DNA from: Klebsormidium nitens
Taxonomy: Eukaryota; Plantae; Klebsormidiophyceae
NCBI GenBank assembly: GCA_000708835.1
Contig: DF237170.1
Coordinates: 1 to 64,000 of the forward strand
Reading direction: 5' to 3'
DNA: 64,000 nt
Shown here piece after piece: positions 6,765 through 49,066 of the stretch. Both the position numbers and the translations under genes were made by a program. Below the pieces are notes generated by a model. It was not told the origin of the DNA and ran no database searches. It saw nothing but the letters and a program-made list of their open reading frames with translations. Positions within the stretch are counted from its first letter, which is position 1; each line of letters begins with the position of its first letter.

Positions 6765-8956
6765 TCTTGTCTCTTGCTTGCTCGCCTACCTAGTCCCTCG
6801 TGCAAGCGCGCGCGTGTCACTGGTGTGCATCGGTGTGCTTGCGCTGCAGCTAGAGCGAAAAACTGGAAAATCAATATCTGAATCCAAATTCAGTGCACAT
6901 GTCATCAACTAAATCCTTGCTTGATGTAAACCATCGCAACCTTAGCACTCCCCTCCTGGCTAAGCTGTATGCTGTACACCAGTTCTGCCAGCTCTTGTAA
7001 TCTTCACGTGCCTTGTGAAAAGAAGGCGCCTTGCAGTCTCTCACATTATGTATTAACAGAAGGCGCTGCTACAATAAATATAACCCTCCACAACATAATC
7101 CTAGCTGCAAGAAGGCCGTTGCCCTGGATACCACTTGCAGTGTATACACCACCAATGCTAACGCGTGAAGTCTCTTGACCACTAGTCCATAAAAGTTTCT
7201 AGCTGGGTAGCCTATCTCCAAAAGGGAAAACTCCAAAAGTATCCGGCATTCATTGAAAGTAGATGCAGCTGATGCAAACATATGAATGGCAAAGCACACT
7301 AGGGAAATTTATTAAAAGAATGGCCTGCTTCTTGACCTAAATTCTTCTGCACTCCTGAAGAATGGTGGTCAATCAACGCCATTGCCAGAACTCTAAAGCA
7401 AGCTTGCTTGTTGAGCTTCGCGTTGATATCAAGAGTGAGCCACATCAGATGGTATGCCATTCGATGTGACCACCGGATACAGTGTAACCAAGTCACTTCA
7501 AGCCGACCAACCTGGGAAGCAATCTCCTGAGGTCACGCAGTAGGCGTCACCAATGACTTCCAAAATGAAAAGAAACCGTTGCCGAAGATGCTAATTAGCA
7601 TTACACAAAATGTGCGCATCTCAGCGAAACAGCTTCAATCTTGAGAAACCCTTCCACCGTGCATAATGCAAAATGCATCTCCCACCACAGGTTGTGTTTT
7701 CCACCATATAGAATCACGCTCAGCTTCTTCTCTCATATCCCTGACATCTCAGCGCAACGTCCAGCATGCTACTCGTACAGAAGAAGAAGATCCTGGCAAA
7801 ACCTTAGGTACTTACCGCCAAATGCCAGTCAAGAGAAAGACAACAGCCGAATGCAACCTGTAATGCGTTCTGACTCAGTCCAGCATACACTAAAGCTTTC
7901 ATTGAAAGCACCTGAAGACTTTTAGACAACTCACCTCTATAAAGTTGTTTCAATTTCAGAAATGGAGCCCTTTGCTGAATGGAACATCGCAACTGGTAAA
8001 CCCCTGCTTGTCCTTTTTCCTCCCTAGCTTCAGCGCCTACTTTACATTGCAAACAACACCTGCAAGATGTTCCTCCACAGTCATGACCCCCGGGCTCGCA
8101 GGATGCATCCAATAAGCAGGAAACCTCCGCGCTGCAATTGCTACGCCTACTCTACGCGTGTTGATGTCAGCTGCTTTAGCCCGCCATCCTCCATTTCCTG
8201 CGTTTATTTTCTTCCTCGGAGTCAGGGCAGGATCCAGCTAGGCAATTGCACAACCTGTTGCTTTTCTCCTCGGGGGGTCCGTTTTGGGCTGAAGTTCACC
8301 GGGGTTTGGCAGGTCGCTCATGAACTGACACGTTGGAAAGAGGTCTGCCACGCGGGAGCGATAAGGCCTTCAAGTCTGACAAGCGATTATTCCGTGTCAG
8401 ATTGCATCAATTGGCCGAGCCAAAATTTCCACATGGCAGCTCCGGTTTATCTGCTGAGGTAAACAGAAAAGTGATCAGCATCTGCCAAAGGCCCGCGGAC
8501 TCCGGAGTCGCGGACAAGAGTTTTTGAGTCATTCCGGGCAGCTGGTTGGCCCGGCCAGTGGCCACGAAGAAACAGGCCGGCACCAGCCTGTCGATTAAAA
8601 TCCACCAGATGCCTTTGATTACCACTGGTCGGATAGTGCACCAATTTAGTTACTTCGAATATCTGATGAGATAAAATCTGGATATTTTTGACTTTTATAA
8701 ACCCACATTTAAGGTACCTAAAATTCGGCACAGTGTCGGCATGCAAGTACCACACGTGAAAAAGTTGCGGTCAAACAGCCGTTTCGCAGTGCAATTATTC
8801 CCGTACATGATACACCCGGGTCCCGTATAATGGTACCGTGGAGGTACCGTCAGATATTTTGGTGCAGAGTCGAGGGCCGGTTGAGTCAACAACGAAACAC
8901 CGTATGTAAACTGACCAAAGTTAGGTGTACCGTATACTAAATAGATTCTCTATCGA

Positions 8957-9162
8957 TGAAACTCAAGAGAAATTAAAATGATCAAAGATAATAATAAGGT
9001 CTTAGGTAACCGCTCTGGGACGGGTAGGGTTGGTTTGGTGGTTAGGGTGGGTACGGGTGCGGAGCAGGTATCTTTTTGGGTTAGGTTTTTTTAGTGTTAG
9101 TTGGAGGCTTGGAGCTTACTATTATCTTTGCTTATTATTGTCTTTCTTGACTCTTGAGAGTT
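8957..9162. mobile_element. Small foldback/MITE-like element, copy 1 of the G-rich-core family
   Basis: Inverted arms caaagataataataag (8983-8998) / cttactattatctttg (9115-9130) and ctcaagag / ctcttgag; central G-rich core 9017-9096; flanking 12-bp direct repeat attctctatcga (8945-8956, 9163-9174). Confidence 0.65.
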
Positions 9163-9621
9163 ATTCTCTATCGACCTGCCCTGGCTTGCTGATCAAAGTT
9201 CAAACCCACCAGTAAGTTATGTATAACCATCTCTGTAACCAGCAAATTCCTAGTAGGGTGGGCAATACACCGACCTGTACCGAACAGGACCTCTACGTAC
9301 CGATTGACCTCATTGTTCCGGGTGAGCCGGGCCGATACTATCTGAGCTGACCTCAGCGGCTCAGCAGCCGCCCAAAACCCTCAAATAGACAGAAACCCTG
9401 CATAAAGCTCAGTTTACACGGTCCCCGCCGACCGGCCGCGCGCTGCATAGCGCCGGCGGCCGCCGGCCACCCGCGGGGCTTATTGAATTTTGCGTTTGCT
9501 GTTCTCAAAATGTACGTCATAGTAATATAGGAAGTGGCGCGCCTTAGACAGAATGCTACTGGGACGTTTCAGGAACAAAAAGGAGCGAAATGCATAGGCG
9601 GATCCAAAAGTGGCCCTCACC

Positions 9622-10928
9622 ATGTCGATGTATACCATCATCACGGCTTTTCTGATGTTTGTGAACGCACTGGCGATCCTCAATGAAGAAAGGTTTCTGA
9701 AGCCATGTGAGCAAGCAAAGCAGTGTGGATTTGCCCTTTTTTTTGTTGCTGAGGGTGGTGCAGCGTGCTTGTGTTCCTTCTCTGGTTGCTTTGTGTCTGC
9801 AAACCATGTAGGAACAGCTTAAACTTTGAAAACTCTTCTGAGCTTTTTGCCCTTTTGCACGCATTTTAACCAGCCAGACATTCTTATTGTGGCCACCAGA
9901 TCAGGCACAACCCGTTTTTGCTGCCATCCTGTGAATGTATTGATGGAGTTGTTAAATGGATTGTGTCCTTTCAATCTGCACAGCGCTCTGAAGAGTCTAG
10001 GAGTGCCTCAGCAAAGGAAAAAAAGCAGAATTGGTTTCCCTGCGGTTTTAAGACATATTGATGAGCCATCCAGTGGGAAACCGACTGATGAGTGCCCCAT
10101 TCAGCTGAGAAAGATTTCAACTGTATGGGACAGAGGCAATCAACATCAGCGGCCTACTTTTTCTGCTATTCTTTGTTCGCCGAACTTCCAACAGGCAAGG
10201 CCTCTGGTGAAAGATCATGAAAACCACAGGGCAGAGCTTAAGCATCCCCAAAAATATCTCATGCTAAAAGCAGGCCTGCCAGCTGTAAGTATGAACACAG
10301 CAGGGAGGTACGACAGTCTGCTGGTACAGTAACTAATGGCCAGAGGATCTTTATGAGCTGAAGTAATCAGGAGCACCAGAATTCAAGCAGTGCTTCCATC
10401 TCACCAACTGGTGCAGGGCTGCCAAGATCAAACTATGCGAACAAGGTGGTCGCATGATTTTGATGCTATTTCGCTGAAATATCTTCCTATACACTATCCT
10501 GTGCAGATGGATGGGGCTTTCAGGAGATGTCGGGAGGGCGTGTAGCATCGCTCAAGGGCCAGATCATTGGACTTTTGCATGCAGTACAATACCTCCGAGG
10601 TGAGAATACAGATCTCACTATAAAGTTGAGATTTGATGGTACCATGAGGATTCAGAGCTTGCTACTTCCCTGATGAGTCCGTAGTCCGTAGGTGCGATGA
10701 CCGTCCCAAAAGCATCTGCGATGCTCTTGAAACCTCTGATAGCATGTCTGCAAAGTCCTGTTAGAAAAGGGCCAGAGATGACCCTTCACTGTGTCGGAAG
10801 GCAGTCTGTGAGCACTTGTTTCTGACAGGAGAGCTCTGAGCCACCTGACCAGATTTCATCTGCCATCTGCAGTTCCTCTTATTGTGATGAATGTGATCAC
10901 CATTTTCGGAAAACTACTGTTTGGATAG
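9622..10928 (+). CDS. YOS1: Yos1/IER3IP1-like ER-Golgi transport membrane protein, 77 aa, exons 9622-9706, 10507-10599, 10873-10928
   Basis: Spliced translation MSMYTIITAFLMFVNALAILNEERFLKPYGWGFQEMSGGRVASLKGQIIGLLHAVQYLRVPLIVMNVITIFGKLLFG*; GT-AG junctions with consistent phases; NALAILNExRFL and LKGQIIGL are family signatures. Confidence 0.95.
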
Positions 10929-12229: not shown

Positions 12230-15200
12230 TCAGCGCTCTCGTTCGGCGAGTTGTCGAACGCCCCGCATCGCCTCCTCGCTCTCCGACTCGGACGTATCTT
12301 CCTGTCTAAACCCCGATACTTTTGATTTCGACGGCGTGGACCCCCCCGGCATGTAAAACAGCCCCGTCTCGTCGTCCGCAATCCAGGTATCGAACTCCGT
12401 GGGGACCCCTTCCAGCCCAGACCTCCGCCCCCCTCCCCCCCAGAACAAGCTCCCCAGAGAACTCCCCCCCAAATCGTCTTCCTTGGCTAATTGGTCACCC
12501 ACAGAAAGCGAACGCTTCAACCCACTAAGATTCCCGGTCGAGCCTTGCCGAGAGCGTGGCCCTTTTCTGTCCCCAGGATCTCCCCCCGTTCCTTTTTCTG
12601 GCGTCAGCTCCCCGTTATCCTTTACGTTAACCGGGTCAGAATCCCCAGCGTTAACTGGGTCAGCTTCTCCGGCAATGACCGGGTTAGCTTCCCCCGGTTT
12701 GACTGGGTTAGCTTGCCCGGGGGGCGCTTCCGGGACGTTGCGGTACAGGTGGCGGGTGACGAAAAGCGCCGTGTCCTCGTCTTTCCAGTAGGCGGTGTGC
12801 GAACTGAGCGCCGAGATGTACGGGTGCTCGAACGTGGCGTCCTGCAGAGCAGTAATTACCGCGGGCTGAGTCATAGAAGAGACTCTCGTTTGCTTGCAAT
12901 TTCTTCGTCGTGGACGATTGAGTTCAATTTAGACGTGATCTAGCGTTCTGCCAGATCCCAACAGCCGTCACCGAGAGATACCCGGAAACGGCACTCCAAG
13001 CTATTATGATTCCCCTGCCCAACCGCAATTCTGCCCTATGGAAGGTTGCCAACCGTGAAGTTCTCTTTCACTCTGGTAATCAAAAGGCTTCCTGATAAAT
13101 AATGCACATTGTATTTCGGTCGGGCCGCCACGGGCCCGCACATCATGGACCACAGACCAAGCTCGTTCCATACTTTGGGCGCGATCCGGAAAGTGCCCAG
13201 TCCGGAGCCTCCAAACGCACTCGCACGAGGAACATTTCCGCTCGCTGGCAAGAACGGACGCTGACAACGAGCACCGGAACGCATCCCCGCACCTGGAGCA
13301 TGAAGTCGATCCGCCCGTGCTTGCTCCCGGTCACCCGCTCCATTACGAGCGCCGTGTGCTGGCTCACTTCGTCCCCCCCCTCCTCCGACTCTGCCGCGCT
13401 GGCCTGGTCTGCCCCCCCGAACGTGGACGCGATCTTGGTCTTCATGCTTGACAGCGAGCTGATGATGTCATTCTGGAGCGCGCGCGAGCGCGCGCTGAGG
13501 TCATCGCGCAGCTGCTGCATCCCGATGTGGAGGCGCTGCCCCCCGCGGTGGTATGGGATGAAGACGGGGCGCCGGGCGACGAAGTCCTTTGACACCAGGG
13601 GCTCGATCCTGCATAAGAGGGGAGCGCAAAATACTCTATTGTGTCAAACGAATTTTGCCCAACTCGTCAAACGAAACATGTGGTACACCTTCGCAGGGCT
13701 TTCATCCAAAGCACAGCACTTTTGAAATACTGGATTTGACGGGTAACATTCAGACAGGGCCATCTTTAGGGTCTATACACACAGAGCTGGTGTTCTTTTT
13801 GGCAAATCGCCGAGAACTCAAGGTGCTGTTTTGCCCAATTTCCCCCTGCAACTCAACGTCGTGCCGGGGGGTAGCTTCCGCACGCAAAATTGCCCCGTAC
13901 ACGGTCTGATCGCAACAACACCCGGTGTTCGGACCGTCACCGGGCTTTTTTCGGGGTGGCCGATTGGAACACCTCGGTGTTGTTGCTGACGTATGACCGT
14001 ACGAGTCGGCGAAATGGAAACAACACCCCGCGATCGGCGCGGTGCTTTTTGGGCGACGGCAGCACCGCGATCCCTGCTCTACCGTCGCTCCGAAAAAAGA
14101 ACACCCTCTGTGTGTGTATAGACCCTTAGTGGAACGGCACATGAGCAACAAGCCGATGAAGCACTGTTGAGCGCTCTGTTTCTAGGGCGGGGAAGCGAAA
14201 ACTGCACAGACAAATTCCCATTCTTGGGTAGAGAGGGTCACAGTGGACGCATAGAAGAGCTGTCTTCTGAATACTGCTTATGGCAAGGGCGTTGGGGGGG
14301 CGACTAAGTAGACGTGCAACAATGAGAGGTGTGTCTGTGTGTCTATGTCTAACGAAGGGTTTGAAAACCGCTGGGATTGAGATTCGATTACAGAAGAAGG
14401 CGTCCGCCAGAAGCGACCAGCCAAGCACTGAAACCTGGGGCGTGAAGTATGAGGCCGATATAACTTTGACACCTGTTTGGAAGGGGCTTCACCAAAAGAC
14501 GATGTTCAACCCCAAAAGCGCCTCACAATAGGTAAACCGGGTCAGTAGAAGTGAAGGGCGGTAGACTCACGCAGAAAGCCCTATACTTACTGAGAATCCT
14601 GAAACGGTGGATCTCCACGTATAAAGGAGCGCCTCACCTATACGCGACGGGGTCGTATGGGTGGAAAATGTTGACCATGTGACGCGCAGCCGGCATGCTC
14701 TCCTCCAGTTTCTTGAGGTCCATATTCTCGCCCCGCGTCGCGCTCCCGAACTCGATGTTGCGGAGCGCTAGGAACATGCCAAGTGGCGAGCCCACGGCGA
14801 AAAACGTGTCCACCTCGAACGCGAGGCGCGGGTAGTGGACGAACGCGTGCGGGCCGCGCTTGCGCAGAACCTGGCATAAGAGGGGCGCGCATATGACATG
14901 AGTGAGTGCTTATTAGTGCTTAAAAGGGGGAAATTTTGGATGCGGAGTACCACCCAGGGGGGCAGTATGCGAATAGGCGAGTACTTGATAATCGGTACCA
15001 AGAAGCAGGGCTGGGATTGCGAGTAGAGTCAATGGGCAAGGGCGTACGAGCATCAGCGGTAACTACGGGGGTTCTCTGCATACAGCACTTGTACTTGTTG
15101 AGTACGTGTCATCGAGTTGTGCTCAGCACTCACAGACATGGCAAAACAGGATGACGGATTCATTCAGGATTCATTAGAGCCAGGTACAAGAAATTCCAAC

Positions 15201-18200
15201 TACCATTAAGACCTTAACCCAACAATCTACGTGCCCGCACCCGTACCCACCCCAGGCCCCCCATCTTACCCCCCCCGTTCTGAATTTGGCGAGCTTGTTA
15301 TCCTGCCGCTTATCATCCTTGATTGAGTCCGAGCTCATACAGGGTTCGTGGCAAAAGCCATCTGTTCCATGAAGAGGATTTTCATAAACTTCTTAATCAT
15401 CTGCTTCAGAAGCGAAACGCGCAAGGGCGCAACGGAAAAAGCGACAACAAACACTTGCCTCTGCGTCGAGCGTGCTCTTGAGATCGTCCAGTCTCACGTC
15501 GACAGACGGGGTCGAAATGAGGAGCGGGCGGCTAACAGGACGTTCCGGTTCCGCTGCAGCAGAGCGGAGCGCCTCTTGGATCTCTGCCGGGGACTCAGGT
15601 ATATGTACGCTAGAATAACGGGGCGCATCTACACTCGCCGTGCTTTTCGCACCTATACTCGCGGGCTGCGTGGCGCGCGCCTCTGCGCCGCTTGGACGTT
15701 CTGACGTTTGCACATCGGACCTGGGCTCCCCTCCGGACCCCTCGCTTGCGTCACCAGAGGGCTGGCTGACGTCACGATGGGCTCGGCCCGCATTTGCGTC
15801 TGCTCGTTCCGGCAAGGAAGACCGATCATCACCCGTGTCCTTTCCCATTCCGCTGGCCGAATCTTCAGTGCCCTCACCGCTGACCGCCGCGAGCTTCTCG
15901 GCAAAAGAAAGAGCGCGCTTGGACCCATCTGCCTCTCCATTCGCAATTTCTATCTCAGAATCGGGTTTTTCAACAGCCTCGTTTCCCTGCGAACTTTCCC
16001 ATCTCCTCAGCTTCTCCCGCAGAATGGCCACCTCCGCTCTCAGCGCCGCCAGCTCCGCGTCGCTGCTCTCGTTCCGGGGGGGTCCGCTGCCAGTGTCATC
16101 ACCCCCCCCTTCAAGCATTCCCGCCGCTTCTGCCAGTCGCATGTCCAGCACATCCAATCCGGATTCTTCGGACGCGCCAGGGGTCGGCTGCTCTTCTACG
16201 GCTACCTTGTCTATACTGCGGCTAGCCGGGGGAATGGTTTGCTCGCCCAAAACTCCCCCCCTTTTCGAAACTCCCGTTTCCTCTCCCTGTTCCACTCTCT
16301 CCGCTCCAGCCTCCGCAGACGTCAATTCGCTGGTCGGCTCATTAATCCGAACCGGAACCCCCGAGTCGTGTTCTGCTCTTTCCGCACCCGTACCAGAGTC
16401 CCCTCGCTCGGCATCTGGAGGGGGGCCTTCATTTCCCTCCGCTCTCGTTCCTTGCTCGCTCCGGTTCTCCTGCATTTCCTCTTCAAACCCCCTTCCCTTA
16501 TATTTCTCCTCGCCTCCTTCTTGCGCCATATCCGTATCCTCCTCCCCCGCAGTTTCACCAGCCCCCTTGCCTGCCACGTCATCTTTACCGCCGTCTCTCT
16601 CCCTCTCTCTTTCTATACCCTCGTGATTTCTCGTCTCCCCTCGTCCACCCTCGTTTCGTGTGACGTTTGATCTGGGGGTCAAACCCGTGTCCTGCCTTCG
16701 TTCTTTAGCCCCAGACTCCGCCTCTGCCGTTGCGATTCCACCAATGTCTTCGTTTTCCAGGCCAACCAGCGCCCCAACTTTCTCAATCACGTCACCTATT
16801 TCCCACCCTCTCCCGACGCTTTCTGCGAACTCTTTATTACTCTCCCCTTCCCCACTAAGTTTCACCCCGACCCCGCTGCCTTCTACACCTTCCCCATCAA
16901 CCGCTCCGCCCTTCTCCCCACCTCCCTCCGTGCCCTTCTGGCTGACGTCAGCGGCCCCCCCTCTGACGCCCCAGCCTTCCCCGCTGACGTCAGCACCGCT
17001 TCCACCGACATCAGCACCGCTTCCGCCGACAGCCGCCGGGGGATCCCCCGCGGGATCCTCGGGGATGCGGCTGAGCGCCCCGCCCGCGGTGCTGGCGGGT
17101 TTGGCAGGAGCGGCCGACGCGAGGAGCCGCGCATGCAGATCGGTGAGGAAGGGCTTCGGCTGGTGACACAGGATGTCGTAACTGAGTACGGACCCGAGGG
17201 AGTGCCCAAAAATGTGCACCTGTGGGGAATGAGTTGGGTGTGAGACAACCAGAATGGCTGGGGGTGACTTGGAATGCTCAGAAGAAGGAACGAAATCGAG
17301 ACACAGGCTGAAATTGAAACAGCCATGGAGAAGAGTCGATGACTCTTGCAGCCAGTATGAGCGGAAAAACTAGGGCGGCGTCCATATCTGCGCTCACCTG
17401 GCCGTCAAAGCAGGGGTTGCTCCCCGCGACGAAGTGCCGGTAATATTGCTCTTCATAAGGTTGAAAAATTGCCCGGATACTGCGGAACCACAACAACTAG
17501 AGGCGGCCGAAAAAGATCAAGCGCCCCTGACCGTTGAACCGAGGGATGCGCCGGCGGGCAACTGCACAACCCTCCAGACCAAAGGGAACGAAGGCCCGGG
17601 TTTGCAGGACCACAACAACTAGAGAAGGCGGAAACTGTTCCAGCGCCCACCTGGCCGTCGTCCGCCGGCGGAAGAAACTGCAAGACTAGATCGTGGGACA
17701 TAAAGGTTCATCCCTTGTGGATATTACAGATCACAAAATCTAGAGGCGGCGGAATTCGACGCCCACCTGGCCGTCGAAGCCGGGGTTCCGCCGGCGGAAG
17801 CGCGCGTACTGGCGGTTGAGCGAGCGGCAGACGGAGTTGACGATGTCCTGGCAGTAGACTGGGCTCATGTAATACAGCACGTCCAGAACCGTCGCGTTTA
17901 CGATCTGGCGAATGCCGCGGATGCCCTCCATCGTGATGTCGTCGATTATATTCTCGCCGCCTAATTGCAAGATCTTGCGCCACTGCAGAAAAGAACAGGA
18001 GGGCAAGGGTTTGAGGATTGAAACCTTTGGAAGGCAGAAGAATATGCTTTCCTGTGTGGGGGCGGGACTCAAAGGTCGGCTTCTCGGGGCGTGAAGGGAA
18101 GGTCGATATCGTCACCCAGCTGCAGGATCTTGCGCCACTGCAGAAAATATAGGGAGAGCGGAGCTTTAGGAAGTCGAAATCCTGGAGGGGTGAAAGAGCA

Positions 18201-21200: not shown

Positions 21201-23205
21201 CGACAGTGGAAGTGAATGAGGTCTTGTAACAGAGTAGAAAAGCGGGGCAGACTTCCTGAAAAATCCTGGCAGAATTCCTGGAAAATCCTAACAATAATGC
21301 ACAAAATGCATAAGATACAGGTCTCAAGGCAGCGTTATGGAAAGGCTTTGTGACCTCGATCAAGCTAGACTCATGATTTTGTAGAGAAGGCACAACGACA
21401 GGGCGGGTAGTGAAATTGAAACGTTTAACGACTTCTTAATCGACATCAACATTCAGCACTTTACCAAGGAGGATGCCATCCCAATGATCTTTGCCATGCA
21501 GTTCGAGTTTTCTTCTTTCTCCACTCCAGATAAGTTATGCAGCACCATGTTCCTGAACCTTGGTTTGTAACAGTAAAGGTGCCCACTGTCCCCAACCTGC
21601 AATTCTCTAATCCGTTTCACATTCAGGCACGGCCAGATCTACACAGACAATGCAAGGTGGTCAGACTTAGAGAAGTGAAATAGCCCAGAAGCGCACACTG
21701 CATCACAAGCAGAGTGTACAAACTCGCTGCCCAAACGAGCGATTGACGCCCCACCTGCTAGATCTTCCTGAAGTCTCTTTCCAGCGGGGGCTGGGCTTTG
21801 GGCCGCTTTCGCAATCTTTCTTGGGGCTGCCTTCAGGGGGGATGCCTGCGGGCTGCCCTGTGTGGTGGCGCCCGCCCCCCGCTCGAGGCGCTCCCGGTCT
21901 TTTAGCTGAGGCCCGATGCTGACCTCAGCAAACTCGCGCCACCAGCACGAAAGCAGCATCTCCTCTTGTTGCTGCAACGGCGGCGATGCATTTGCTGTGA
22001 GCTTCAGTAAAGGAGAGTCTGTTGCGGCTCCTTTCATCATTCCCAAAGCTTATGGGGCATTTCAGGGAGAATCTGGCCTTGTATCTCTAAGTTTTCTTCA
22101 ATGAGTCGAGGGTTTCGGCACGAGGACAATGGGGAACGTTTTACAGAATGGCCCTTCACTGAGAGAGGATGCAATCCAGTCTTACCCGGTAGGCGGCCTC
22201 GAGCGCCGCAGAATCCAACGTGCCAAAGCGCAGCCATTCGCCTTTCAGCGCAGCCTCTGTGGACGGCACCAGGGCCGCAGCCTGATCATCTGTACAATGG
22301 CAAGCGAAAGAGTATTCTAAGGAAGAGAAACCAGAGAGAGTTATTGTGGACCAGAATCTAGAGCAGTTTCGCCCATGGATGATTGCTCAATTGGACCTAT
22401 GGTGAGGGCAGTCACCATAGTACTCTGTGTTTTAAGACCCCTGTGACCTCATCAAAGTCCTCAAAGACAGAGTATATGCTCGTTCCTTTTGCCTCCATGG
22501 GTCCATCATGACGCAATGCCTTGTAAGCCAGCGGTTCAGCTTCTTCCGGACAGCCCACGACATTGAGTGGTTCAGGACCTTTACGGCTTGAATCTGAGAA
22601 AAAACCTTGGCGATTCCAATAGTGCATGACAAGTAATCTGCTTGTCAAAGTGTGAAACATGGAATCATGGAGGAAAAATCGCCAAAGATGAAACACGAAG
22701 CATTCCTGATTACACCACCACCATGATATTGCGGGAATCCAGATAACACGAGAGGAAGGCAAGACAAACCGGACAGCAATCGAATCTCTGGATGCTTACT
22801 AAAGTGCCAGGGAGTGCGTGTACGACACACATCCAGATGCATGCACATAGACTTTAGCAATGCCCACAATAGACACTGCACCAACAAATTGCATCGATCA
22901 CCTCTCAGTGCTTTCTTGCTGAAGAACCACCGCACATCGGCCCCATCAGACGGCGAGTTCGTGAGCTGATTGGACGCTGCCCTGCCCTTCAAAGCCTCAA
23001 AGTAGGTGGTCGAATCCCGGGCCATCTGGACCTTCGGCGGTGTCTTTGGAAGGTCTAAGACTGGTCTTCGAGCGGGCGGGGAAGGCCACCGCAGCTCATC
23101 GGCTTGTGAAGCAAGCTCCTTTTCGAATTCATCATCCTTCTTCATGGTTGGCTCGGTGCTGTCTGAAGAACCAGCCCCGTGCTGATGCGCCATGGCGCCT
23201 GCCAT
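12230..23205 (-). CDS. SGR2: SGR2-like DDHD-domain phospholipase A1 (PA-PLA1 family), multi-exon
   Basis: Motifs SPSDGADVRWFF, LLSCWWREFAEVSIGP, LYALFTGEDDTWEAW, HLVFMVHGIGQRLE, VLFIPCQWRK, lipase GHSLGS, FFAVGSPLGMFL, NIFHPYDPVAYRIEPL, GRIDFMLQ and HPYISALSSHTAYWKDEDTALFV occur in order on successive exons. Confidence 0.93.
13769..14125. mobile_element. Tourist-like (PIF/Harbinger) MITE, 357 bp, in an SGR2 intron
   Basis: About 32-bp TIR gggtctatacacacagagctggtgttcttttt versus aaaaaagaacaccctctgtgtgtgtatagaccc; TTA on both sides (13766-13768, 14126-14128); no coding capacity. Confidence 0.85.
15211..15280 (-). repeat. G-rich-core family copy 2 (diverged), in an SGR2 intron
   Basis: Reverse complement contains GGGGTGGGTACGGGTGCGG...TTGGGTTAAGG, colinear with the core at 9017-9096. 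Confidence 0.6.
17365..17830 (-). repeat. Decayed tandem copies of an SGR2 exon 3' end plus donor site
   Basis: gcccacctggccgtcg occurs at 17645-17660 and at the true junction 17761-17776; a diverged copy lies at 17391-17455; a shared upstream ctagaggcggc motif also occurs at ~17497. Confidence 0.8.
17960..18460 (-). repeat. Four ~150-bp-spaced copies of an SGR2 acceptor plus exon start (cag|TGGCGCAAGAT...)
   Basis: gatcttgcgccactgcag or close variants at ~17971, ~18127, ~18274 and ~18433; only the ~17988 acceptor continues into conserved ENIIDDITMEGIRGIR. Confidence 0.85.
19760..20260 (-). repeat. Decayed tandem copies of the SGR2 intron end plus GLYALFTGEDD exon start
   Basis: ccggttccgtt(tactagggcgga) and catcctcg..gtgaacagcg motifs recur at ~19720-19795, ~19870-19935 and ~20030-20105. 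Confidence 0.8.
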
Positions 23206-23626
23206 GGCCCTGGGTGCGGTTGCAGTCTGCAAAGAATATTCTGCGAGATGCACATCTGCTGAACTAGATGGTGGGCTCTGCCCGGGACAATGTGCTCGGG
23301 ATAACTTTGTGTGATTGGTATCGTGTACGTTCTGCCCCCTGACGCTTGACACAACTTTAAACTGGGCCGGCGCAGCACCGCTCCGGTTGGAAAGGCCACG
23401 TGTACGAAGCCCACTGGTCATGCCTTGCAACTTCAACGGAGGGGATCCCTTCATACTCCTGAACAAAATCACTGGAAAATTGATGATCGTCTCCTGAACA
23501 AATCTGAGAGCCACTGAATGAACTTTGCAAACGGAGGCCGCGGCCTGCTTAGAAGTTCAGAAGTCATAAAGTAAGTCTTAAGTGCACATCCGTTTGATAT
23601 CTTCCGCTCAACGTTCAGCCTTCGAC

Positions 23627-35100: not shown

Positions 35101-37935
35101 GTCTTCGAGCAGAAGAACGAGGTCGCGAAGGCGGTGGAGTCGGAGCTCGAGAAGGTCAGGCCCATATTCGGTGCTGCGCAGTTTCTGCTGCAATTCTTTC
35201 CACGTTTCATCTGCTCGTCGTCGTGTGGCATTTTGTTCTCAAGCGGAGGCAGACACTTCTATTTGTAAAGCTTTGTAGCAGGGTTGCCCTTTCCTTATCC
35301 TGGAGTTGGTTTTCTTCGGCCCGATGACGTTGAAATGTTCATCGTTGCTGCTCCCTAAGTGGGACCCCAGGGTTTGAGGTTGTTTCGTCTGAGCGTTTAG
35401 GTCGAGCATGTACTCTCGAGGTCGCTTATGCAAATAGCTGACGGGCCGAGATGGTCCAGCTACTGATTTCTGAGGGATCTTGAAAGATCGAGTTAGCAGG
35501 AAAGTACATGCAGGACTTCATGGTTCCGTGGACTTGCCTTGCTTGAGCTGGGCATGTCTAAGGCTGCTGAAAATTTATTTTTGGCCTTCTCACAGCTTCA
35601 CGGAAGAATCTGTTCCAGGCAGATTTACCGGAGGGGTTACTCGGCTTTCGCACCCAACAAACTGGAACCTCGAGCAGGCCAGGCTGCTCTGCACGTCCTC
35701 ATCATCCATTGCATTCTTCAATGTCTCGTTTTTTTCAGCAAGTACATGATCGAGCTGATGGTTTTCTGCTGACGCAGGCGATGAGTGCCTACGGGTACAA
35801 CATTGTCCAGACCCTGATTGTGGACATCGAGCCGGACCTCCAAGTCAAGAGGGCCATGAACGAGATCAACGCCGGTAAGTTCCCTCTTCCCTCCGTCCTT
35901 GTTATCTGGTTTAGGCGGGTCTGTCTCTGTTCAACTTCTTATCTCGTCTTGCTGTGGTTTCCTCCCAGCTTGGATCGACACGGCAGCGTCTGCGAATGTC
36001 AAGATAGTTGAGCTTGGACTGTTTTGAGTCACGTCGCAGTCTCAGCACGTCCCGTCTTTTTCTAGCAAGCGTAGCACGGTGTTGACGAAGGCGGAAAGGA
36101 AGGACGGAGCTCGGATGGTAATTACACTTGCTCCTCACCGCGCCTTTAACGTCGTTTCCCGTGACGTCATCCCTCGCGGCACTTTGCAGCCGGGTTGGCA
36201 AAGAAGGGACCAAACACAGAAAAATAGCCTGTGCACCCAACAAAAGCTGTGCTATGCTAATCGTAGATGGTCAGATCTTCGACGGAGTCGTTCATTCGTG
36301 ACGTCATTTCGGGAATTCTGACGTCATTTCTTGCTCCTCTTGGCAGCTGCCCGCATGCGCATGGCCGCGGTGGAGAAGGCGGAGACGGAGAAGATCTTGC
36401 AGGTAAAGCGGGCGGAGGGGGAGGCGGAGAGCAAGTACCTATCCGGGAAGGGTGTGGCCCGGCAACGCCAGGTGGGTGACGTCAGCATTTCGGCGATTCA
36501 GATTACTTCGACAGAACTTGGAGTTTCGGGCTATCCATATCCGTCCTTTATTGTTTGTGTAAGACTTGCAACCCTTGCGCGAACCCAAAACCTGCGATCG
36601 CTTTCCAAAGGCGAACGCACGGTCCAAGATCGTAAAATTGTCAATCATGCTGGCCTCTGACGGTGCAAGTTCCACGGAAAGAGCTGTGGCTCCGGTGGTG
36701 CCACGAGGATGTCAGGCAACGTTCTTGTGTCGAGCGCCTGTCGTTATGGAAGTCCAGGTTGCCGATATGGCCCCCGCCTGCGATGGTGCATCGTCGAGAC
36801 GACGCTTTCTTGCACGCACTCACGAACAGCTTGGCGGTTCTGCCCAGCAAGTGTGCTTCGTCATCAAGACGAGATCATTCTAAATCAACACGGTTTGGAT
36901 ACCGTCCACCGACATGCCCTACATACATGTCAAGAAAGATAATGTGAAGTATATTGTCATCGCACTGGGACGGGTGGGGATAGTTTGGGGGTTAGGGCGG
37001 GTAGGGGTGCAGAGCAGGTGCCTTCTTTTAGGGTTAGCCTTTGAGTGTTACTCGGAACCTATCATCATTGTATCATCATTCTCGTGTTTCATATCCTCTG
37101 CAGTAGTGGTGCCCGGGTTTGCAGCGGTGCCAGCAAACCGCTGGTTGGTTCAAAAGTTGGTCAGCGCGGCTTGTCATCTACTGTGCTTGAGTTCGCTGAC
37201 GTCACATTCTCACCACGCGCTTGTTTTCGCTGACGGCGCGGCGAACCTTCGCGACGTGTGCAGGCCATCGTCGAGGGACTACGCGAGAGCGTGGTGGCGT
37301 TCGCGCACGGCGTGGAGGGCACCTCCCCGAAGGACATCATGGACATGGTTCTGCTAACCCAGGTGGGTCAAGAAGCGGGTTCCAAACCGCTGGGCGTTTC
37401 TTTTCCCCAACTCTTTTGTCACCGGCAGAATGAAAAGCCCTTGGTTTCTGGCACCAGGAGAGGCCTCCTCATGATCTCGACCTTTTTCTGAGCTGGTGAG
37501 ACCCCCACTCAAGAGTCTTGCTGTGAAGCACAAGAGAAAGTGCTACACTGGCATGCTTGGTGTGGACTCCGATCTCACCGGCCTCAAAACGACGTGTAGC
37601 TCTATTGCACCCCTGGCGTGAGAAGGTTGGATTAAGAAGTATGCTTGTCTCAAGGAGACGTCTGCTCCTAGTTCCGCCAAGGGCTTCTCTCGAAGAAGTT
37701 TGTGCTTCCAAAGACGTGTGTTAAACCCCAGCTCTCTTCTTCCTTTGACGTTGTTTTAACTTACAGCTCTCGTCCTCTTTTGCAGTATTTCGACACCATG
37801 AAAGAGATCGGGGCACACAACAAGAGCTCGACCGTGTTCATGCCCCACGGCCCAGGTGCGGTTGCTGACGTGGCAAGCCAGATCAGGGCCGGAACGCTCC
37901 AGGCGGCCTCCGTACAAGAGATGGCAAGGGATTGA
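32169..37935 (+). CDS. HIR: Hypersensitive-induced response (HIR) / band-7 SPFH protein, 10 exons
   Basis: Spliced translation [18 protein letters not shown]|EDWGRFSK|ILEPGCHF...[10 protein letters not shown]|DNVFV...QAYVFD|VVRASVPK|[10 protein letters not shown]...|[20 protein letters not shown]...|...[17 protein letters not shown]|AIVEGLRES...|YFDTMKEIG...*; all GT-AG. Confidence 0.96.
36967..37050 (+). repeat. G-rich-core family copy 3, in a HIR intron
   Basis: GGGACGGGTGGGGATAGTTTGGGGGTTAGGGCGGGTAGGGGTGCAGAGCAGGTG aligns base-for-base with 9017-9070; the left flank tcaagaaagataat resembles the arm of copy 1. Confidence 0.8.
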
Positions 37936-39537: not shown

Positions 39538-40260
39538 TTAACCTAAGAGCTTTCTCTCGCAATCATAGGCTGCTCTCGCCAGCTCTTGGACTGATCTGCC
39601 CATTGTTTTAAAGCTAAAGTTGTCCTTCTCTTTCTCATAATCGTTACATTCGCCGCACCTAATGATCCCCGTCCCCCAGTCCCTCTCGAAAGTTGCCGAA
39701 CCAATAAGAATTATCTTAGTGTTGCAACGGTTGTTGGGGCGATGCGTGCGGTAGTTATTGCATCGAACGACAGATTTAGGCAGCTTCTCGAGTCTCTTGA
39801 TCAACTCAATGTCTTCGGTCAGCGCATCCCGCTCCGCTTGAAGCTTCTCTTTTTCGTCGTTCGCCCCCCTGATCTGTTCTTTCAACTGAAGAACTTCTGC
39901 CTCGTGTTCCTCCTTCATCTTGCGGACTTCTGAAGCGTGCTCGGAAATGATGGCGTTAAGTTCTTTCTCCACCCCCTCGCAACAGAGGTATCTTGCGGTT
40001 GCTCTCAGCATGGCCAGCTCTGCGCTCGATATCCTAGATACCTCCAGCCCCAAGTCGGTCGTGCCATGCATGACCGAGAAAATGACGCGAAAACACACAG
40101 GATCCACGTCCAAATAGGGTAATCCGTTTACCTTCTGGTGAGGAATCTCTGACGTGAGCATCCTAGAAAGGAGCCAGTCGTGGGAGAGGCACTTCTCTCT
40201 CTCTAGAACAAAGAGAGTTCCTTGGATGGACACTTTCAGGAGAGAGAGGTCCTCCGCCAT
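39538..40260 (-). CDS. Intronless BTB/POZ (KCTD/T1-like) protein with a coiled coil and Cys-containing C-terminus, 240 aa
   Basis: LKVSIQGTLFVLEREK...WLLSRML...PYLDVDPVCFRVIFSVM...ATARYL is a BTB-type pattern; heptad-rich middle; C-terminal CGEC. Confidence 0.75.
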   Translation of the reverse strand: MAEDLSLLKVSIQGTLFVLEREKCLSHDWLLSRMLTSEIPHQKVNGLPYLDVDPVCFRVIFSVMHGTTDLGLEVSRISSAELAMLRATARYLCCEGVEKELNAIISEHASEVRKMKEEHEAEVLQLKEQIRGANDEKEKLQAERDALTEDIELIKRLEKLPKSVVRCNNYRTHRPNNRCNTKIILIGSATFERDWGTGIIRCGECNDYEKEKDNFSFKTMGRSVQELARAAYDCERKLLG

Positions 40261-40900
40261 GGAAGCGTGTTCACTCCCTAGTGAATAGGGCGGAGCTTAC
40301 GACGGGAAGACACTTCCTGAGATGCCTTTTTAACCAAGGGCTGACGACGCGCGAGCTCTACATTGATCAGCAGATCTTGCGCTCTGTGGTCTTGCTCTCC
40401 AGAAGGAGGGAGACCTGGATACGTGCGCTAAGCCCCCCTGTCTGTTACCCACTCTACAATTCGAATCGAACTGGCAAATCTCTGGTCGGGTCACATCAAC
40501 AAAAATTACGGCCACAAGATGTATTATCTCAGCCGGTGACATGGACCAATCCGACATCAGTCAGAATCATCTGTGGTCCAATCAATCGGGCGACCTGCTA
40601 CTTCTGAGCAGGCCCTAGAGCCACGTCAGTGATCGAGATAAGGTAATAAGCACCAGTGAATCTTATTGGACAAAACCCGATGAGAAACACGGCAGGTAAG
40701 CTGGAAAATTACCCTGTAGACGATCTGTGATTATATCCCTCCTCATTTACGTGCAGAACTGTCAATCTCTGCTCTCGTTCCAAGAGGAGGCCGCCCCAAG
40801 CACGGGCGCTCGAAAAGACTTGACTCATTCTGAGAGAAGAACCAGAACTCTTGAAGACCTTCAAAGTTACGTCGAGGTCACAAGGATTGAAGACGTCACC

Positions 40901-41597
40901 ATGGGGGCTGATGCGCCCTTTCTGAAGGTGTGCATTCAAGGAAGTATGTTTGTTCTGGACAGGGAGAAGTGCCTCTCACAGGATTGGCTTCTTTCGCGGA
41001 TAGTCACGTCAAAGGCTCCTCACGAAATGGTCAACGGGGTGCCTTACCTCGATGTTGATCCCGTCTCTTTCAGGGTGATCCTCTCAATCATGCAAGGCAC
41101 CACTGATGTGGCATTGGAGGTCTCTAGAATGTCAAGCGCGGAGCTGGCTCTCTTGAAGGCAACTGCAAGAACCCTTCTCTTTGACGAGATTGAGGAGCAG
41201 ATCGGATCGATTGAGTCGGAGCACGATGCAGAAGTCTGCAAGCTGAAAGAGGAGATTCAAGAAGAGCCAGCTTGAGATACAGAAGCTCACTTTGGAGAAT
41301 AAGGCGCTGGCCAAGGAGCACGAGATCGTCAAGATTCTGCAGAAGCTGCCCAAATCCATGATCTTGTGCAGGAATAATCGCAGCTATGACTGCAAATATC
41401 GTCAATGTGAGGGAAGAATTCTTCTCATTGGTGCCGGAACCTACGAACGCGCCGGGCTGAGATGCGAGTTGCGCTACCACGATGTATGGCATGAAGCGAA
41501 GCCCAGTGAATTTCGCAATGAGACTGTGGGGGACGGGGCTGACGGGCTGCTGATGGCGGTTCAAGCGTGCGAGAGGAGTCTGAACCCAAACTTATAG
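40901..41597 (+). pseudogene. Inverted paralogue of the BTB gene with a 1-nt frameshift near 41255-41270
   Basis: MGADAPFLKVCIQGSMFVLDREKCLSQDWLLSRI aligns with the neighbour; the frame stops at 41275 but homology continues in another frame (KSQLEIQKLTLENKAL...LQKLPKSMILC...AVQACERSL). Confidence 0.7.
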
Positions 41598-45700: not shown

Positions 45701-47010
45701 CGCCACGTCTGCGGCCTGGGATGCTTTGGCGCTCGTACGAGATGCCTGCAAAGAAAGTGACTTTTGAATGCGGCCGCGATCCGTCCAGGGTGCAGTACCA
45801 CACAAATCCTGTCGCCTTCGGCCGCCCATTCCGAGTCTGCATCACGTGAGGGGGCGTCAACCAAAAAAAAGTCCTCCCGGACGATTTGGCACAAGCAGGA
45901 CATCTTTTTGTGGGATCACCCCTGCGGTCCGTTCCTGGTTGAAGCTGCGGATCTCGCGCCACGTTATCGATCTTACAATAGTCCCTGAAGCGACCCACCT
46001 GCTGTTCCGTTACCAAACCTGGATCACCCAGCGGCGTCATCGCAGTAGAGCAGTAGGGCTGCGGTTGATGTTAGCTTGCAAGCATTCCATTTGCTTGCGT
46101 CTGGTCGGAAACTCAGCCTCTACTCAAAATGCCTCAAACGAGAAAGAGCGTGCTTATATACACTTCTCACACGTTGCTCATCCGACCCGGTCAAAGCTGC
46201 AAGGTCCGTTCTCAGAATTAGTTCATCCACTTACCTTGGCAGCATCGATGACCATTTCAGCCGCAGGACTTCTCTCAAGACGTTTGAGGGCCAGAGCCGC
46301 GGCCCCTCGCACCTCTTCGCTCGAGCTTTCCAGCAGGTCCACTAACCGGCTCACGGCCCCCGGAACAGCAGCAATGACCTCCTGGTTTGCTGGGTCACCC
46401 GCAAGGTTCCCGAGCGCCGCAGCCGCACACGCCTGTGCATCCTGTCTCGAGCTCCCCAGAAGGTCCACTAACCGACCCAGGGCCCCCGAAATAGCAGCAA
46501 TGTCCTTTTTGTTTGCGCTGTCACAAGCAAGATTGCGCAGAGCGCCAGCCGCTTGTGCCTGCACCTCGTCGCTCGAGCTTCCCAGCAGGTCCACTAACCG
46601 ACCCAGGGACCCCGGAACAGCAGCAATGGCCTTTTTATTTGCGCTGTCGTATGCAATATAACAAAGAGCCCAAGCCGCTAGTGCCTGCACCTCGTCGCTC
46701 GGGCTATTCGCAGGTCCACAAAACGACGCAGAGCCCCAGGAACGGCAGCAATGGCCATTTCGTATGCGGCGTCGTTGCTAGCAAGTTTTACCAGGGCCCC
46801 GACGGCGTTTACTCTTATGATTCGGTTCAAGCTTCCCAGAAGATCTACCAACCGACCAAGGGCTTCTGGTATGGCACCGATAGTCTTCCGACTTGTGGCC
46901 TCATCTGCGATACTCTTGATGGCTAAGACAGCTTTACCCTGCACCGCTTCACTTGAGCTTCCCAACAGGTCCACCCACCGCCGGATGTCCTCTTCGGACG
47001 TTGTTTGGAC
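42789..47010 (-). pseudogene. ARM-repeat / coiled-coil / Pelle-RLCK-type kinase / U-box gene with two apparent frameshifts; 5' end not resolved
   Basis: ARM-like repeats (LGRLVDLLGSS..EVQ..AAGALRNLA) at 46235-47010; kinase [46 protein letters not shown]; U-box VPHRFICPISQ|DVMEEPVLAADGNHYDRSFIAKWL..SPLTN; 1-nt deletions at ~46705 and in the G run 44375-44379. Confidence 0.8.
43949..44093. repeat. 36-bp minisatellite x4 in an intron of the U-box kinase gene
   Basis: Unit approx. tcattttctgaggacaagaaggccgctactctaatg; the fourth copy carries a small insertion. Confidence 0.9.
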
Positions 47011-48869
47011 CTGCAAAGCAAGGGTTGGAAGAAATCAAATGCCTAATTTCCAATAAGAAACCTCTCTGAAGCGGCCAACTTCCCAAATGTCGCCAAAGAT
47101 GCGTGCAGAACTCTAAAGAGGAAATGAAATGTGCGATACATCCCTCAGCCAATATCAGAATTTGATACACCAAACACCGTGTCTGCGCCCGATCGAGCTA
47201 TAAATCAGATTGGCAGCAGCCTGTGATCTCCTCATCTGAGAAGAGCTTGCATCCAAAGGGGACTGGAAGGAGACAGGAGCAGAAACCAGCATCCTGAGCA
47301 TCGAGATGAATCCATCATCTCACACTGCTGGTTTCGAAAATTGTTTGTAAGTCGAAGTTTCAAGCTACATGACAGTACTGGAGTCCGAATCTGAGAAATC
47401 GTCGGAAGCTTATCACAGTGGCATGCCAACTTGCTCAGATCTAGGAAGGAATCTGGAGACGTGTACGAACTTCCTTTATTATGGTTTCAGTGGGTCTCAT
47501 GGCTGTATTTGACAATCCATGATTGAGCAGCAAAAGCCGAACCAAGGCTCAAAGATCCAGCCCTTTTGGAACTACGTTAGGCTCGAGCTCTCGAGTTAGG
47601 CTCTGTCCAGTGTGTCGATGCATTATGACTAGGGAGTCCAAGTCATACCAAAACAGAGACCTTCTTTTCTGAAATGTTCCGAAGGTCAAAGGACGAAGTT
47701 GGCAGGGTTGGGACCGAGCACCAACTTGCATACATACCTTGTTCTCCATGTTGTCCTTTCAATTGGATTATGGTATGTATATTTTGAATCCTAGAAACTC
47801 AACAACTTGCGTTCTTGGCCCCCTCTCAGTCTCAATGTCGTTACTAGGTACCACTGCCGTTGCTCGCTTCCGTTGCTCGCTTCAGCAGGTCACGGTACAG
47901 CTTGCAGAGACTACATTACGCCAACAACCTGTGGACATCCTTCCTCAAGCCTTCCTCTTCCGTGATGGGAACATTAACTCAGTAGCTTCGATTATGTAGT
48001 CTGTTGCAAAATGATGCAGAGCCTCTTTCCAATGCCAGAGAAGCTTTTCCGTAACCTTTCCATTCAGATATTTGGTCGACTGATCTACTGTGTACCCTTA
48101 GAGATACTTACAGAATCGACGAGCTTGAGCAGTACTAGTTGCTGCTTAGAGGCCTTTTGGTCATTGACCAATGACGACGAGTCCACAACACGCCCAGGCC
48201 TCGCCTACTAGTTCACTAGTCTAGTTGCCTAGTTTGATTGGCAGACTAGCCCCCTAATGCGACGTTCCACTTTGACATCGGTTGAAGACGAAGGGTCGAG
48301 CTGATCTGAGCGGATGTTGCATTATGCAGTGGACTGCTGGATCTGCATGCACATGTGGTCTGCCAGCAGTACTGCAGCTTGTCTGCACTACGCTGATTTG
48401 CTGGTGATCAGCCAGGAGATCCCTGTTGAAACATTGACAGCGACGAAATTGAAAGCGGTGGAACAAAAGAATGAAGTCAACGCTGCAATGCGACGCCCTT
48501 CATCACTGACATCATGCTTACAAATAGTCTTGTGGCTACAAAGGACATGATGTGCAGACATCATGGTATAGCTGTGAGCCCGGAACAAGTCTGACAAGTC
48601 ATGCGAAGCTTATACGTCTACAGAACTCAGTCTACCTATAACGCTTCACAATGGTAGTCCGAGTCCGTAAAACTTGGTCATGTCATCATCAGACAGGGCC
48701 AACAGTACATCAGAGCCACGCGCAGTGTCGTTCAGTTGGAGTCCCAGTTCGACGCCGTGGCATCAGCCGTCGTATCCAACGGTCGTATGCAACCGTCTGC
48801 TCGCTGGCGTACATGAAGCCGCGGCCGCGCTAGCGACCGTCGGTGCAAAACGGCGCGGCGCCCGGCCCG

Positions 48870-49066
48870 CCGCGCGCGTATTTCTCGATGTAGTGAACAG
48901 CAAGCCCAGTGAACAGTAGGCATTTTGGGGTTACTAAAAACCCTAACCTAAGGAAACACCCGCTCCGCACCCGGACCCACCCTAACCCCCTAACTAACCC
49001 TACCCGTCTCCGTTACTGTTCACTGGCTGTTACTGTTCACTACATCGATCGGAATGCCGCGCGCGG
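48870..49066. mobile_element. Foldback/MITE-like element, G-rich-core family copy 4 (core on the - strand)
   Basis: Exact inverted 16-mer tcgatgtagtgaacag (48885-48900) / ctgttcactacatcga (49033-49048), extended by ccagtgaacagta and ccgcgcgcg; core 48931-49010 (ccctaacc repeats) matches 9017-9096. Confidence 0.8.

Follow-up and report, generated by a model that had tools for sequence, protein, structure and literature searches.

Within the window, by which we mean the whole 64,000 nucleotides analysed here (positions 1-64000 of Klebsormidium nitens scaffold DF237170.1), four dispersed copies of a small element share a G-rich core that is set between inverted arms, and the sequence of the arms differs by type. 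We put the probability at about 70% that these copies represent a non-coding, non-autonomous, cut-and-paste foldback/MITE family, probably Mutator-like, with the G-rich core in common. Their anatomy, with arms made of tandem subrepeats and flanking repeats of 8-12 bp, is that of a small foldback/MITE element, and we regard the family as a known type of transposon in an unusual form, not as a novel kind of system. An earlier note on this DNA had described a dispersed, mobile-looking family with a conserved centre, and this much of it stands, but its emphasis on telomere likeness was overstated. So was its proposal of an undescribed system, because the anatomy is of the foldback/MITE type and MITEs with an internal region better conserved than the terminal inverted repeats (TIRs) have been published (PMC2872659).

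A profile of the G-rich core, built from the four copies and run with nhmmer over the whole window, gave four matches with E-values from 1e-17 to 1e-20 and no fifth copy; it bore out the copies claimed earlier and placed them to within a few bases of the coordinates given then. Likewise, when 3 or fewer mismatches were allowed, a core-derived 18-mer matched the window four times against 0.12 matches expected. The core is 76-93 bp long and strand-asymmetric, whole elements measure 177-206 bp, and the copies lie on both strands at non-coding positions (Table 1). Gene annotation for the first 16.8 kb of the window was taken from the K. nitens record KFL_002210020. It places copy 1 approximately 460 bp upstream of the Yos1 gene, between two divergently oriented genes, and copy 2 within an intron of a DDHD-domain gene whose sense strand is the G-rich strand of the element. 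No Pfam match was found in the 20 open reading frames (ORFs) neighbouring copies 3 and 4. The family is frequent here, at four copies per 64 kb, and is found in introns and near gene starts, which makes it relevant to the repeat annotation of K. nitens, a reference streptophyte alga. As for the coding content of the window, protein look-ups with its kinase and BTB-like ORFs matched relatives' contigs only, a representative protein search with its ORFs returned land-plant and other algal proteins, and exact look-ups with its single-exon ORFs gave no match.

Several identities for the element could be dismissed. It is not a coding exon, since the ORFs that cross the four cores are short and differ in frame; it is not a known RNA, since Rfam 15 gave nothing at gathering score in the window, nor at E-values up to 1 for copies 1 and 4; and it is not a tRNA-derived SINE, since neither ARAGORN nor Rfam produced a match. 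The possibility that the core is an inner piece of a larger repeat, which the earlier note had named as a way in which its proposal could fail, was also discarded, because no homology extends past the core within 3 kb on either side.

Table 1. Features of the four elements in the window (positions 1-64000 of DF237170.1)
Feature	Position	Strand	Evidence
Copy 1 left flanking direct repeat ATTCTCTATCGA, candidate target-site duplication	8945..8956	.	perfect 12-bp match to 9163-9174
Copy 1 left inverted arm, AT-rich, AAAGATAATAA subrepeat	8957..9012	+	score 21, motif matches
Copy 1 G-rich core (minimal shared part 9019-9095)	9013..9105	+	nhmmer E 1.4e-19
Copy 1 right inverted arm, two tandem 16-bp subrepeats CTATTATCTTT / TTATTGTCTTT	9106..9162	+	
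Copy 1 right flanking direct repeat ATTCTCTATCGA	9163..9174	.	
Copy 2 flanking 8-bp direct repeat TTTTGCCA, weak candidate duplication	15139..15146	.	repeated at 15349-15356
Copy 2 right arm, two tandem AATGAATCC subrepeats, 11-bp spacing	15147..15194	-	
Copy 2 G-rich core, intronic (DDHD-domain gene)	15195..15285	-	nhmmer E 7.8e-17
Copy 2 left arm, degenerate	15286..15348	-	
Copy 2 flanking 8-bp direct repeat TTTTGCCA, second unit	15349..15356	.	
Copy 3 left-arm remnant (AAAGATAAT..AAG), related to copy 1 left arm	36935..36962	+	local alignment
Copy 3 G-rich core, sole perfect TTTTAGGG unit	36963..37056	+	nhmmer E 1.2e-20
Copy 3 two tandem TATCATCATT subrepeats, right of core	37060..37080	+	
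Copy 4 flanking 10-bp direct repeat CGCGCGCGGC, candidate target-site duplication, low-complexity	48869..48878	.	repeated at 49056-49065
Copy 4 right arm, two CTGTTCACT subrepeats	48879..48925	-	
Copy 4 G-rich core (minimal shared part 48933-49008)	48926..49014	-	nhmmer E 4.9e-20
Copy 4 left arm, two AGTGAACAGTA subrepeats, 17-bp spacing	49015..49055	-	pairing score 33
Copy 4 flanking 10-bp direct repeat CGCGCGCGGC, second unit	49056..49065	.	

Every core carries 7-8 GGG runs (7 in copy 1), in keeping with the five or more that had been reported, and consists of 42-46% G and 7-14% C (44% G in copy 1). A canonical G3+N1-7 quadruplex motif is present in the cores of copies 2, 3 and 4, at 36967-37007 in copy 3 and 48970-49005 in copy 4; copy 1 needs a 15-nt loop. 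Conservation is higher in the G-run columns than in the other columns of the core (0.89 against 0.60, permutation p 0.0002), a figure that derives from four sequences only and from an alignment that itself anchors on the G-runs. This better conservation is the one observation that points towards a G-quadruplex (G4), protein-binding or replication role, which the core might conceivably have. In copies 1 and 4 the core ends in a run of 5-7 T that copies 2 and 3 have not kept. The TTAGGG words attributed to the core occur in copies 1, 3 and 4 but are missing from copy 2. The label "telomere-like" fits poorly: these words are isolated, the telomere unit of K. nitens is TTTTAGGG (PMC3622300), and that unit appears a single time, in copy 3, with no tandem array of it in any of the four copies. 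The copies share a unique, non-repetitive sequence of 76 bp, so they go back to one common source and not to additions by telomerase. The C-rich strand of copy 3 contains a template-like word, AACCCTAAAA, that might have linked the element to telomerase RNA. This link was also rejected, as no other copy has the word (copy 4 has the related AAAACCCTAA) and plant telomerase RNAs are far longer than the element.

The arms are imperfect, approximately 40-55 bp in length, and each contains about two tandem subrepeats of 11-17 bp. Inverted arms had been claimed around copies 1 and 4, and in both cases the pairing score (21 and 33, respectively) was reached by none of 300 shuffles. The inverted repeat of copy 1 (8963-9001 / 9112-9150) covers 39 nt with 77% complementarity, while the whole copy 4 element folds as a hairpin (z -6.9) and has AGTGAACAGTA four times, twice in each arm and inverted between the arms. 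Copies 1 to 3 have two tandem subrepeats of 11-16 bp on at least one side. Pairing is marginal in copy 2 (score 15, matched or exceeded in 5 of 300 shuffles), and neither copy 2 nor copy 3 forms a stable stem on folding. Since copy 3 lacks both significant inverted arms, judged by pairing score against shuffles, and a flanking direct repeat, we take it to be a decayed copy. The assertion that the arm sets are unrelated is accurate for copies 1 and 4, whose arms are 26-28% identical, which is the random level, but it does not extend to copies 1, 2 and 3, whose arms are distantly related through a loose common motif of the AAAGATAAT / AAGGATGATAAG kind (copies 1 and 3 align locally over 8984-9105 and 36935-37056). 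No terminal motif common to both arm types was seen. Neither type occurs elsewhere in the window without a core, and a relative has no such arms in its orthologous regions; only chance-level words were found in either place.

In a typical MITE, constraint falls on the TIRs, which the transposase reads, and the internal sequence is free to drift. The textbook pattern is reversed in this family: core similarity is greatest (84% identity) between the two freshest copies, 1 and 4, with the G-runs retained, and the ends of these two cannot be aligned. The earlier view of the core as the conserved part is in agreement with this comparison.

Perfect direct repeats adjoin the arms of copy 1 (12 bp, P 0.0055) and copy 4 (10 bp, P 0.015, a CG-rich low-complexity word), and copy 2 has an 8-bp repeat (P 0.088); the P values are comparisons with random sites, a length of 12 bp being reached at 0.55% of 2000 such sites. 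The repeats around copies 1 and 4 look like target-site duplications, and the claim of mobility is strengthened by them. The three lengths differ, and all are compatible with a duplication of approximately 9 bp plus or minus chance extension.

The distribution of the family outside the window is consistent with insertion. There was no copy in 89 kb of DNA from Klebsormidium-like relatives that takes in the syntenic loci of copies 1 and 2, which suggests that the copies are lineage-specific insertions. The element is absent from the orthologous intron and intergenic region of the relative (L126 and L122), where exons are 77-93% identical to those of K. nitens; the relative's non-coding DNA is only about 60-65% identical, so no empty site could be aligned at base level. 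A scan of public metagenomes with the 18-mer picked 120 loci (684 kb), none of which fits the core profile, and the 18-mer matches there are accordingly put down to chance.

These observations suggest how a foldback/MITE family of this kind could operate. The elements, each a strand-asymmetric G-rich centre between two imperfect inverted arms with subrepeats, would be mobilised by a transposase encoded elsewhere. This enzyme would bind the arm subrepeats and terminal motifs, excise the element and insert it again through a staggered cut of about 9 bp (the observed range is 8-12 bp), and a cut of that length points to a Mutator-like or foldback enzyme. At least two arm types of unrelated sequence bear a nearly identical core. 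Either selection at the level of the element may have maintained that core, whose G-runs would assist transposition in cis, or recombination may have handed it from one element lineage to another. Exchange of arms between elements may have taken place, as far as four copies allow a judgement. The sequence shows directly the four copies with their arms, subrepeats and flanking repeats, the stronger conservation of the G-runs and the lack of the element at orthologous loci of a relative; what we infer is the transposase superfamily, the function of the subrepeats and whatever part the core plays. No autonomous partner or transposase was seen in the window. Clear arms together with flanking repeats in only two of the four copies count against the foldback/MITE reading, as do the unequal lengths of those repeats, the low complexity of the 10-bp one and the lack of a terminal motif common to the arm types. 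The occurrence of 84% identical cores beside unalignable arms is unexplained by it.

That pairing of like cores with unlike arms invites explanations in which the core is the essential part. It is unlikely, though the least so of the alternatives, that the mobilising machinery needs the G-run core and not the ends, either because a hairpin with a G-quadruplex loop is recognised by its shape, in which case arms of any self-complementary sequence would serve, or because the core makes new arms by fold-back copying of adjacent DNA; were this true, we would be dealing with a eukaryotic DNA element that is identified by its centre and whose ends are replaceable. A slightly more doubtful proposal is that the core propagates alone, by entering existing palindromes or MITEs or by seeding foldbacks when a 3' end turns back at the G-rich block and adjacent DNA is copied in inverted orientation, so that the arms are local in origin. 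The random-level identity of the arms beside the closest pair of cores favours such a course, as does the failure to find either arm type coreless elsewhere in the window, but the core by itself shows neither terminal repeats nor a duplication, and the relative's orthologous regions hold no arms. In copy 1, moreover, a perfect 12-bp repeat encloses arms of no more than 77% complementarity, from which it follows that arms and core were inserted together as an already imperfect unit, and the relatedness of the arms of copies 1, 2 and 3 shows that arms are passed down instead of forming afresh at every locus.

Two further readings would place the function of the core outside transposition. The elements could be genes for hairpin RNAs, such as small-RNA precursors or other structured RNAs, with a variable stem and a G-rich loop conserved as a processing or binding signal. 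Plant small RNAs are known to arise from MITE hairpins, copy 4 is a long, near-perfect hairpin, and the T run closes the core in both intact copies; we nevertheless consider this improbable, given the want of an Rfam match at E-values up to 1, the unstable stems and unconserved T run of copies 2 and 3, and flanking direct repeats that indicate insertion at the level of DNA. Most improbable of all is that the core is a cis-element under host selection, be it a site for G-quadruplex or telomere-repeat proteins, an origin or a regulatory element, and that the arms are incidental. The conservation of the G-run columns and the location of copy 1 between divergently oriented genes are what such an element might display, but the former is subject to the small sample and anchored alignment described above, orthologous positions in a relative whose exons are 77-93% identical hold no copy, the copies occur on either strand, in an intron as well as in intergenic DNA, and TTAGGG is not the telomere unit of this alga (PMC3622300).

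If the pattern holds genome-wide, the foldback/MITE family would be a test case for the contribution of internal sequence to transposition, for the effect of a G-quadruplex in the loop on foldback excision, gap repair and template switching, and for MITE lineages that swap their ends or change their transposase.

Some features of the K. nitens elements recall known systems of quite different kinds. With their scattered TTAGGG or TTTTAGGG words and G-rich setting, the elements are reminiscent of interstitial telomeric repeats and plant telo-boxes; unlike interstitial telomeric repeats, they have no tandem array. SINE families share highly conserved central domains, one of which, domain V, is also found in the MER6 DNA transposon (PMC6887750), and the K. 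nitens elements resemble them in having a short conserved central module with differing ends that is transferable between element types. SINEs, however, are retroposed RNA-polymerase-III elements without inverted arms whose domains are conserved across phyla, whereas the K. nitens core was not found outside K. nitens in the metagenome loci and relatives' DNA surveyed. Another parallel is the CMITE group of the coral Acropora, MITEs of about 100 bp in which an internal region of about 75 bp, of unknown origin and proposed by its authors to aid transposition, is better conserved between families than are the TIRs (PMC2872659). The likeness is one of design only. CMITEs have TIRs of 13-14 bp, a shared CCYT terminal motif and TTAA duplications of the piggyBac type (PMC2872659), neither of which is present at the flanks of copies 1, 2 and 4; the K. 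nitens elements have arms of 40-55 bp, no common terminal motif and flanking repeats of 8-12 bp, and their core is G-rich, a property not reported for that of CMITE.

The K. nitens elements resemble the Mutator/Foldback families, among them Tm1, Muta1 and Drosophila FB, in their inverted ends of short tandem subrepeats. These families include MITE-like, non-coding members and make target duplications of 8-10 bp, mostly 9, with no target consensus. Tm1 of root-knot nematodes has TIRs composed of tandem repeats of 13-15 bp and duplications of 8-10 bp (PMC3169594), and in Muta1 of Aedes one subterminal repeat and a terminal motif at each end suffice for transposition (PMC5499845). The K. nitens elements differ from them in having only about two subrepeats in each arm, flanking repeats of 12, 10 and 8 bp, and no MULE transposase partner that we could see. 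In FB and Tm1 it is the ends that define the family while the centre varies; in K. nitens the centre is held in common and the sequence of the arms differs by type.

The G-rich core is carried by four dispersed copies, each of which proved real, as the earlier note had claimed: a profile built from them matched these loci with E values of 1e-17 to 1e-20 and gave no further match in the 64-kb window, and an 18-mer from the core, searched with up to three mismatches, gave four matches where 0.12 were expected. The part common to every pair of copies is about 76 bp long and bounded by GACGGG and TTTTTAGT; about 10 further right-hand bases are common to copies 1-3. We found no homology outside the core within 3 kb on either side of the four loci, so the core is not the interior piece of a larger repeat, the alternative that the earlier note had raised against itself. 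A coding exon was rejected too: the ORFs that span the cores are short and their frames differ among the copies.

Coordinates of the core copies, their flanking direct repeats and the genes neighbouring copy 1
Feature	Position	Strand	Remark
Copy 1 core	9013-9105	+	profile match
Copy 2 core	15195-15285	-	profile match
Copy 3 core	36963-37056	+	profile match
Copy 4 core	48926-49014	-	profile match
Copy 1 flanking repeat	8945-8956 and 9163-9174		ATTCTCTATCGA, 12 bp, perfect
Copy 4 flanking repeat	49056-49065 and 48869-48878		CGCGCGCGGC, 10 bp, perfect
Copy 2 flanking repeat	15349-15356 and 15139-15146		TTTTGCCA, 8 bp, perfect
KFL_002210020	3841-6764	-	annotated gene, K. nitens
Yos1-family gene	9622-10928	+	annotation

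G makes up 42-46% of each core and C 7-14%, and the GGG runs number seven or eight, where the earlier note had given five or more. Judged from sequence, the predicted quadruplex potential is clear: the canonical motif is met in three of the four cores, and copy 1 would require one long loop. Mean pairwise identity is 0.89 in the consensus GGG-run columns and 0.60 elsewhere in the core (permutation p 0.0002); because this statistic comes from four sequences in an alignment anchored on the G-runs, the better conservation of the runs is suggestive. The telomere unit of K. nitens is TTTTAGGG (PMC3622300). The core has isolated TTAGGG words, as had been noticed, and a single TTTTAGGG that is confined to copy 3, so that the proposed telomere character reduces to a loose likeness.

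To look for inverted arms, we took 150 bp from either side of each core, aligned the left flank with the reverse-complemented right flank and compared the scores with those of 300 shuffles. Arms frame copy 4 (score 33) and copy 1 (score 21), with none of the 300 shuffles scoring as high in either case, in agreement with the first reading of this DNA. Copy 2 scored 15, a value reached by 5/300 shuffles and lying at about the 98th percentile among random genomic sites, and copy 3 scored 10, giving no inverted-arm signal within these flanks. The paired stretches lie symmetrically around the core, about 15-60 bp away. As single-stranded DNA, copy 4 is predicted to form a long hairpin, at z -6.9; for copy 1 the predicted hairpin is weaker, at z -2.8, and the folding of copies 2 and 3 does not surpass that of shuffles. 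Copy 4 has four occurrences of AGTGAACAGTA, two per arm, spaced by 16-17 bp and inverted between the arms. Two tandem 16-bp units akin to AAAGATAATAA occupy the right arm of copy 1, whose left arm has one good unit. In each of copies 2 and 3 the right side holds a tandem pair of units spaced by 11 bp (AATGAATCC, ATCATCATT), and the left side has a poorer unit.

Copies 1 and 4 are the closest pair in their cores (84% identity in a global alignment, 85% over 73 bp by BLAST), but their arms are only 26-28% identical, which is the random level. The proposal that the arms are unrelated holds for this pair but not for all four copies: the left arm is partly common to copies 1 and 3 (8984-9016 and 36935-36966) and the arms of copy 2 contain a related AAGGATGATAAG motif, which places copies 1-3 in one loose arm lineage and copy 4 in another. 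The possession of one core by arm types of unrelated sequence is the unusual feature of the family, and the label 'inside-out MITE' is apt.

Direct repeats adjoin the outer arm ends of copies 1, 4 and 2; none was found flanking copy 3. Among 2000 random window sites of matching geometry, 0.55% had a repeat of 12 bp or more, 1.5% one of 10 bp or more and 8.8% one of 8 bp or more. The repeats delimit elements of 206 bp (copy 1), 177 bp (copy 4) and 202 bp (copy 2). Copy 1 has a perfect flanking repeat around arms of only 77% complementarity, so its arms and core came in together, already imperfect.

Scaffold DF237170.1 is 136.6 kb long and the window covers its coordinates 1-64000, with a G+C content of about 52%, few long ORFs and no match in window-wide searches for tRNAs and Rfam families. 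Copy 1 is intergenic, between KFL_002210020, to which a 491-residue ORF (3844-5316, minus strand) is 100% identical, and the Yos1-family gene, which starts about 460 bp downstream. A DDHD-domain gene (1677 residues, minus strand) contains copy 2 in one of its introns, about 590 nt long, and the G-rich strand of the copy is the sense strand of the gene. In K. nitens this is a GC-AG intron whose 5' splice site, at about 15462 on the minus strand, reads GCAAGT; the orthologous intron of a related species begins with GTAAAG, at about 207 of contig L126. Also within the DDHD gene span is a separate MITE (13766-14128; about 357 bp) with 33-nt terminal repeats (GGGTCTATACACACAGAG...) that are 91% complementary, TTA on both sides and an interior unrelated to the G-rich core; its pattern is that of Tourist/PIF-Harbinger-type elements.

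Contigs from Klebsormidium-like relatives were reached by protein searches in Logan assembly SRR23617307 (L122, L126) and JGI metagenome sample 3300060284 (L121, L123, L124). Window 15661-1187 has a collinear counterpart in L126, at 77-93% exon identity, and about 48.9-39.5 kb has one in L122. The core is absent from all 89 kb of this DNA, even at E values up to 10, where about 5.6 copies would be expected at the window's density. In the relative, the orthologues of the copy 2 intron and of the intergenic region around copy 1 contain neither core nor arms; non-coding identity is about 60-65%, so these absences are regional and not base-level empty sites. A metagenome scan with the core 18-mer returned chance matches only. 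Long Klebsormidium-like contigs (13-75 kb) collinear with DF237170.1 exist in public metagenome and run assemblies, and L121-L124 and L126 provide outgroups for dating K. nitens insertions.

Other repeats were seen on the scaffold. At 46309-46904 about five 126-bp units stand in tandem; they are 62-88% identical and apparently encode protein on the minus strand. Their array has a longer counterpart in L122 (2184-3888), within a called product of 523 residues, which suggests a repeat protein with an array that differs in length between species. A tandem duplication at 23056-28037 (period about 2.27 kb, segments 75-92% identical), with an additional partial unit about 2.75 kb further on, probably represents a small family of tandem genes, for which Pfam gave no match. 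Two paralogous ORFs of 240 and 182 residues lie head to head at 39538-41275 and match each other in inverted orientation over 292 nt at 72%; they have no Pfam match and an orthologue in L122 at 65% identity; neither is recorded among annotated K. nitens proteins.

The G-rich elements have the anatomy of small non-autonomous foldback elements or MITEs: they are short and non-coding, occur scattered over both strands, and have inverted arms of tandem subrepeats bounded by direct repeats of 8-12 bp, compatible with a length of about 9 bp. This design matches published Mutator/foldback families. The TIRs of Tm1 consist of tandem repeats of 13-15 bp, the family includes MITE-like members and its duplications measure 8-10 bp (PMC3169594); in Muta1 a terminal motif and one subterminal repeat per end suffice for transposition, and extra subterminal repeats give higher excision (PMC5499845). 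By analogy with both, the arm subrepeats may serve as docking sites for a transposase, and the repeats outside the arms are putative target-site duplications; no transposase partner was seen. The earlier note took the family for a candidate undescribed system, but a conserved interior with variable TIRs has a precedent in the coral CMITEs, in which the TIRs vary more between families than does an internal region of 75 bp; the authors of that study suggest that the region aids transposition (PMC2872659). CMITEs differ in being piggyBac-like: they duplicate TTAA and have a CCYT end in common, and neither feature appears at copies 1, 2 and 4 of the K. nitens element. A second analogue of a core common to unlike ends is found in the central domains conserved across SINE families with differing ends, one of which also occurs in a DNA transposon (PMC6887750). 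The family is best read as a variant of the known foldback/MITE kind and not as a new system.
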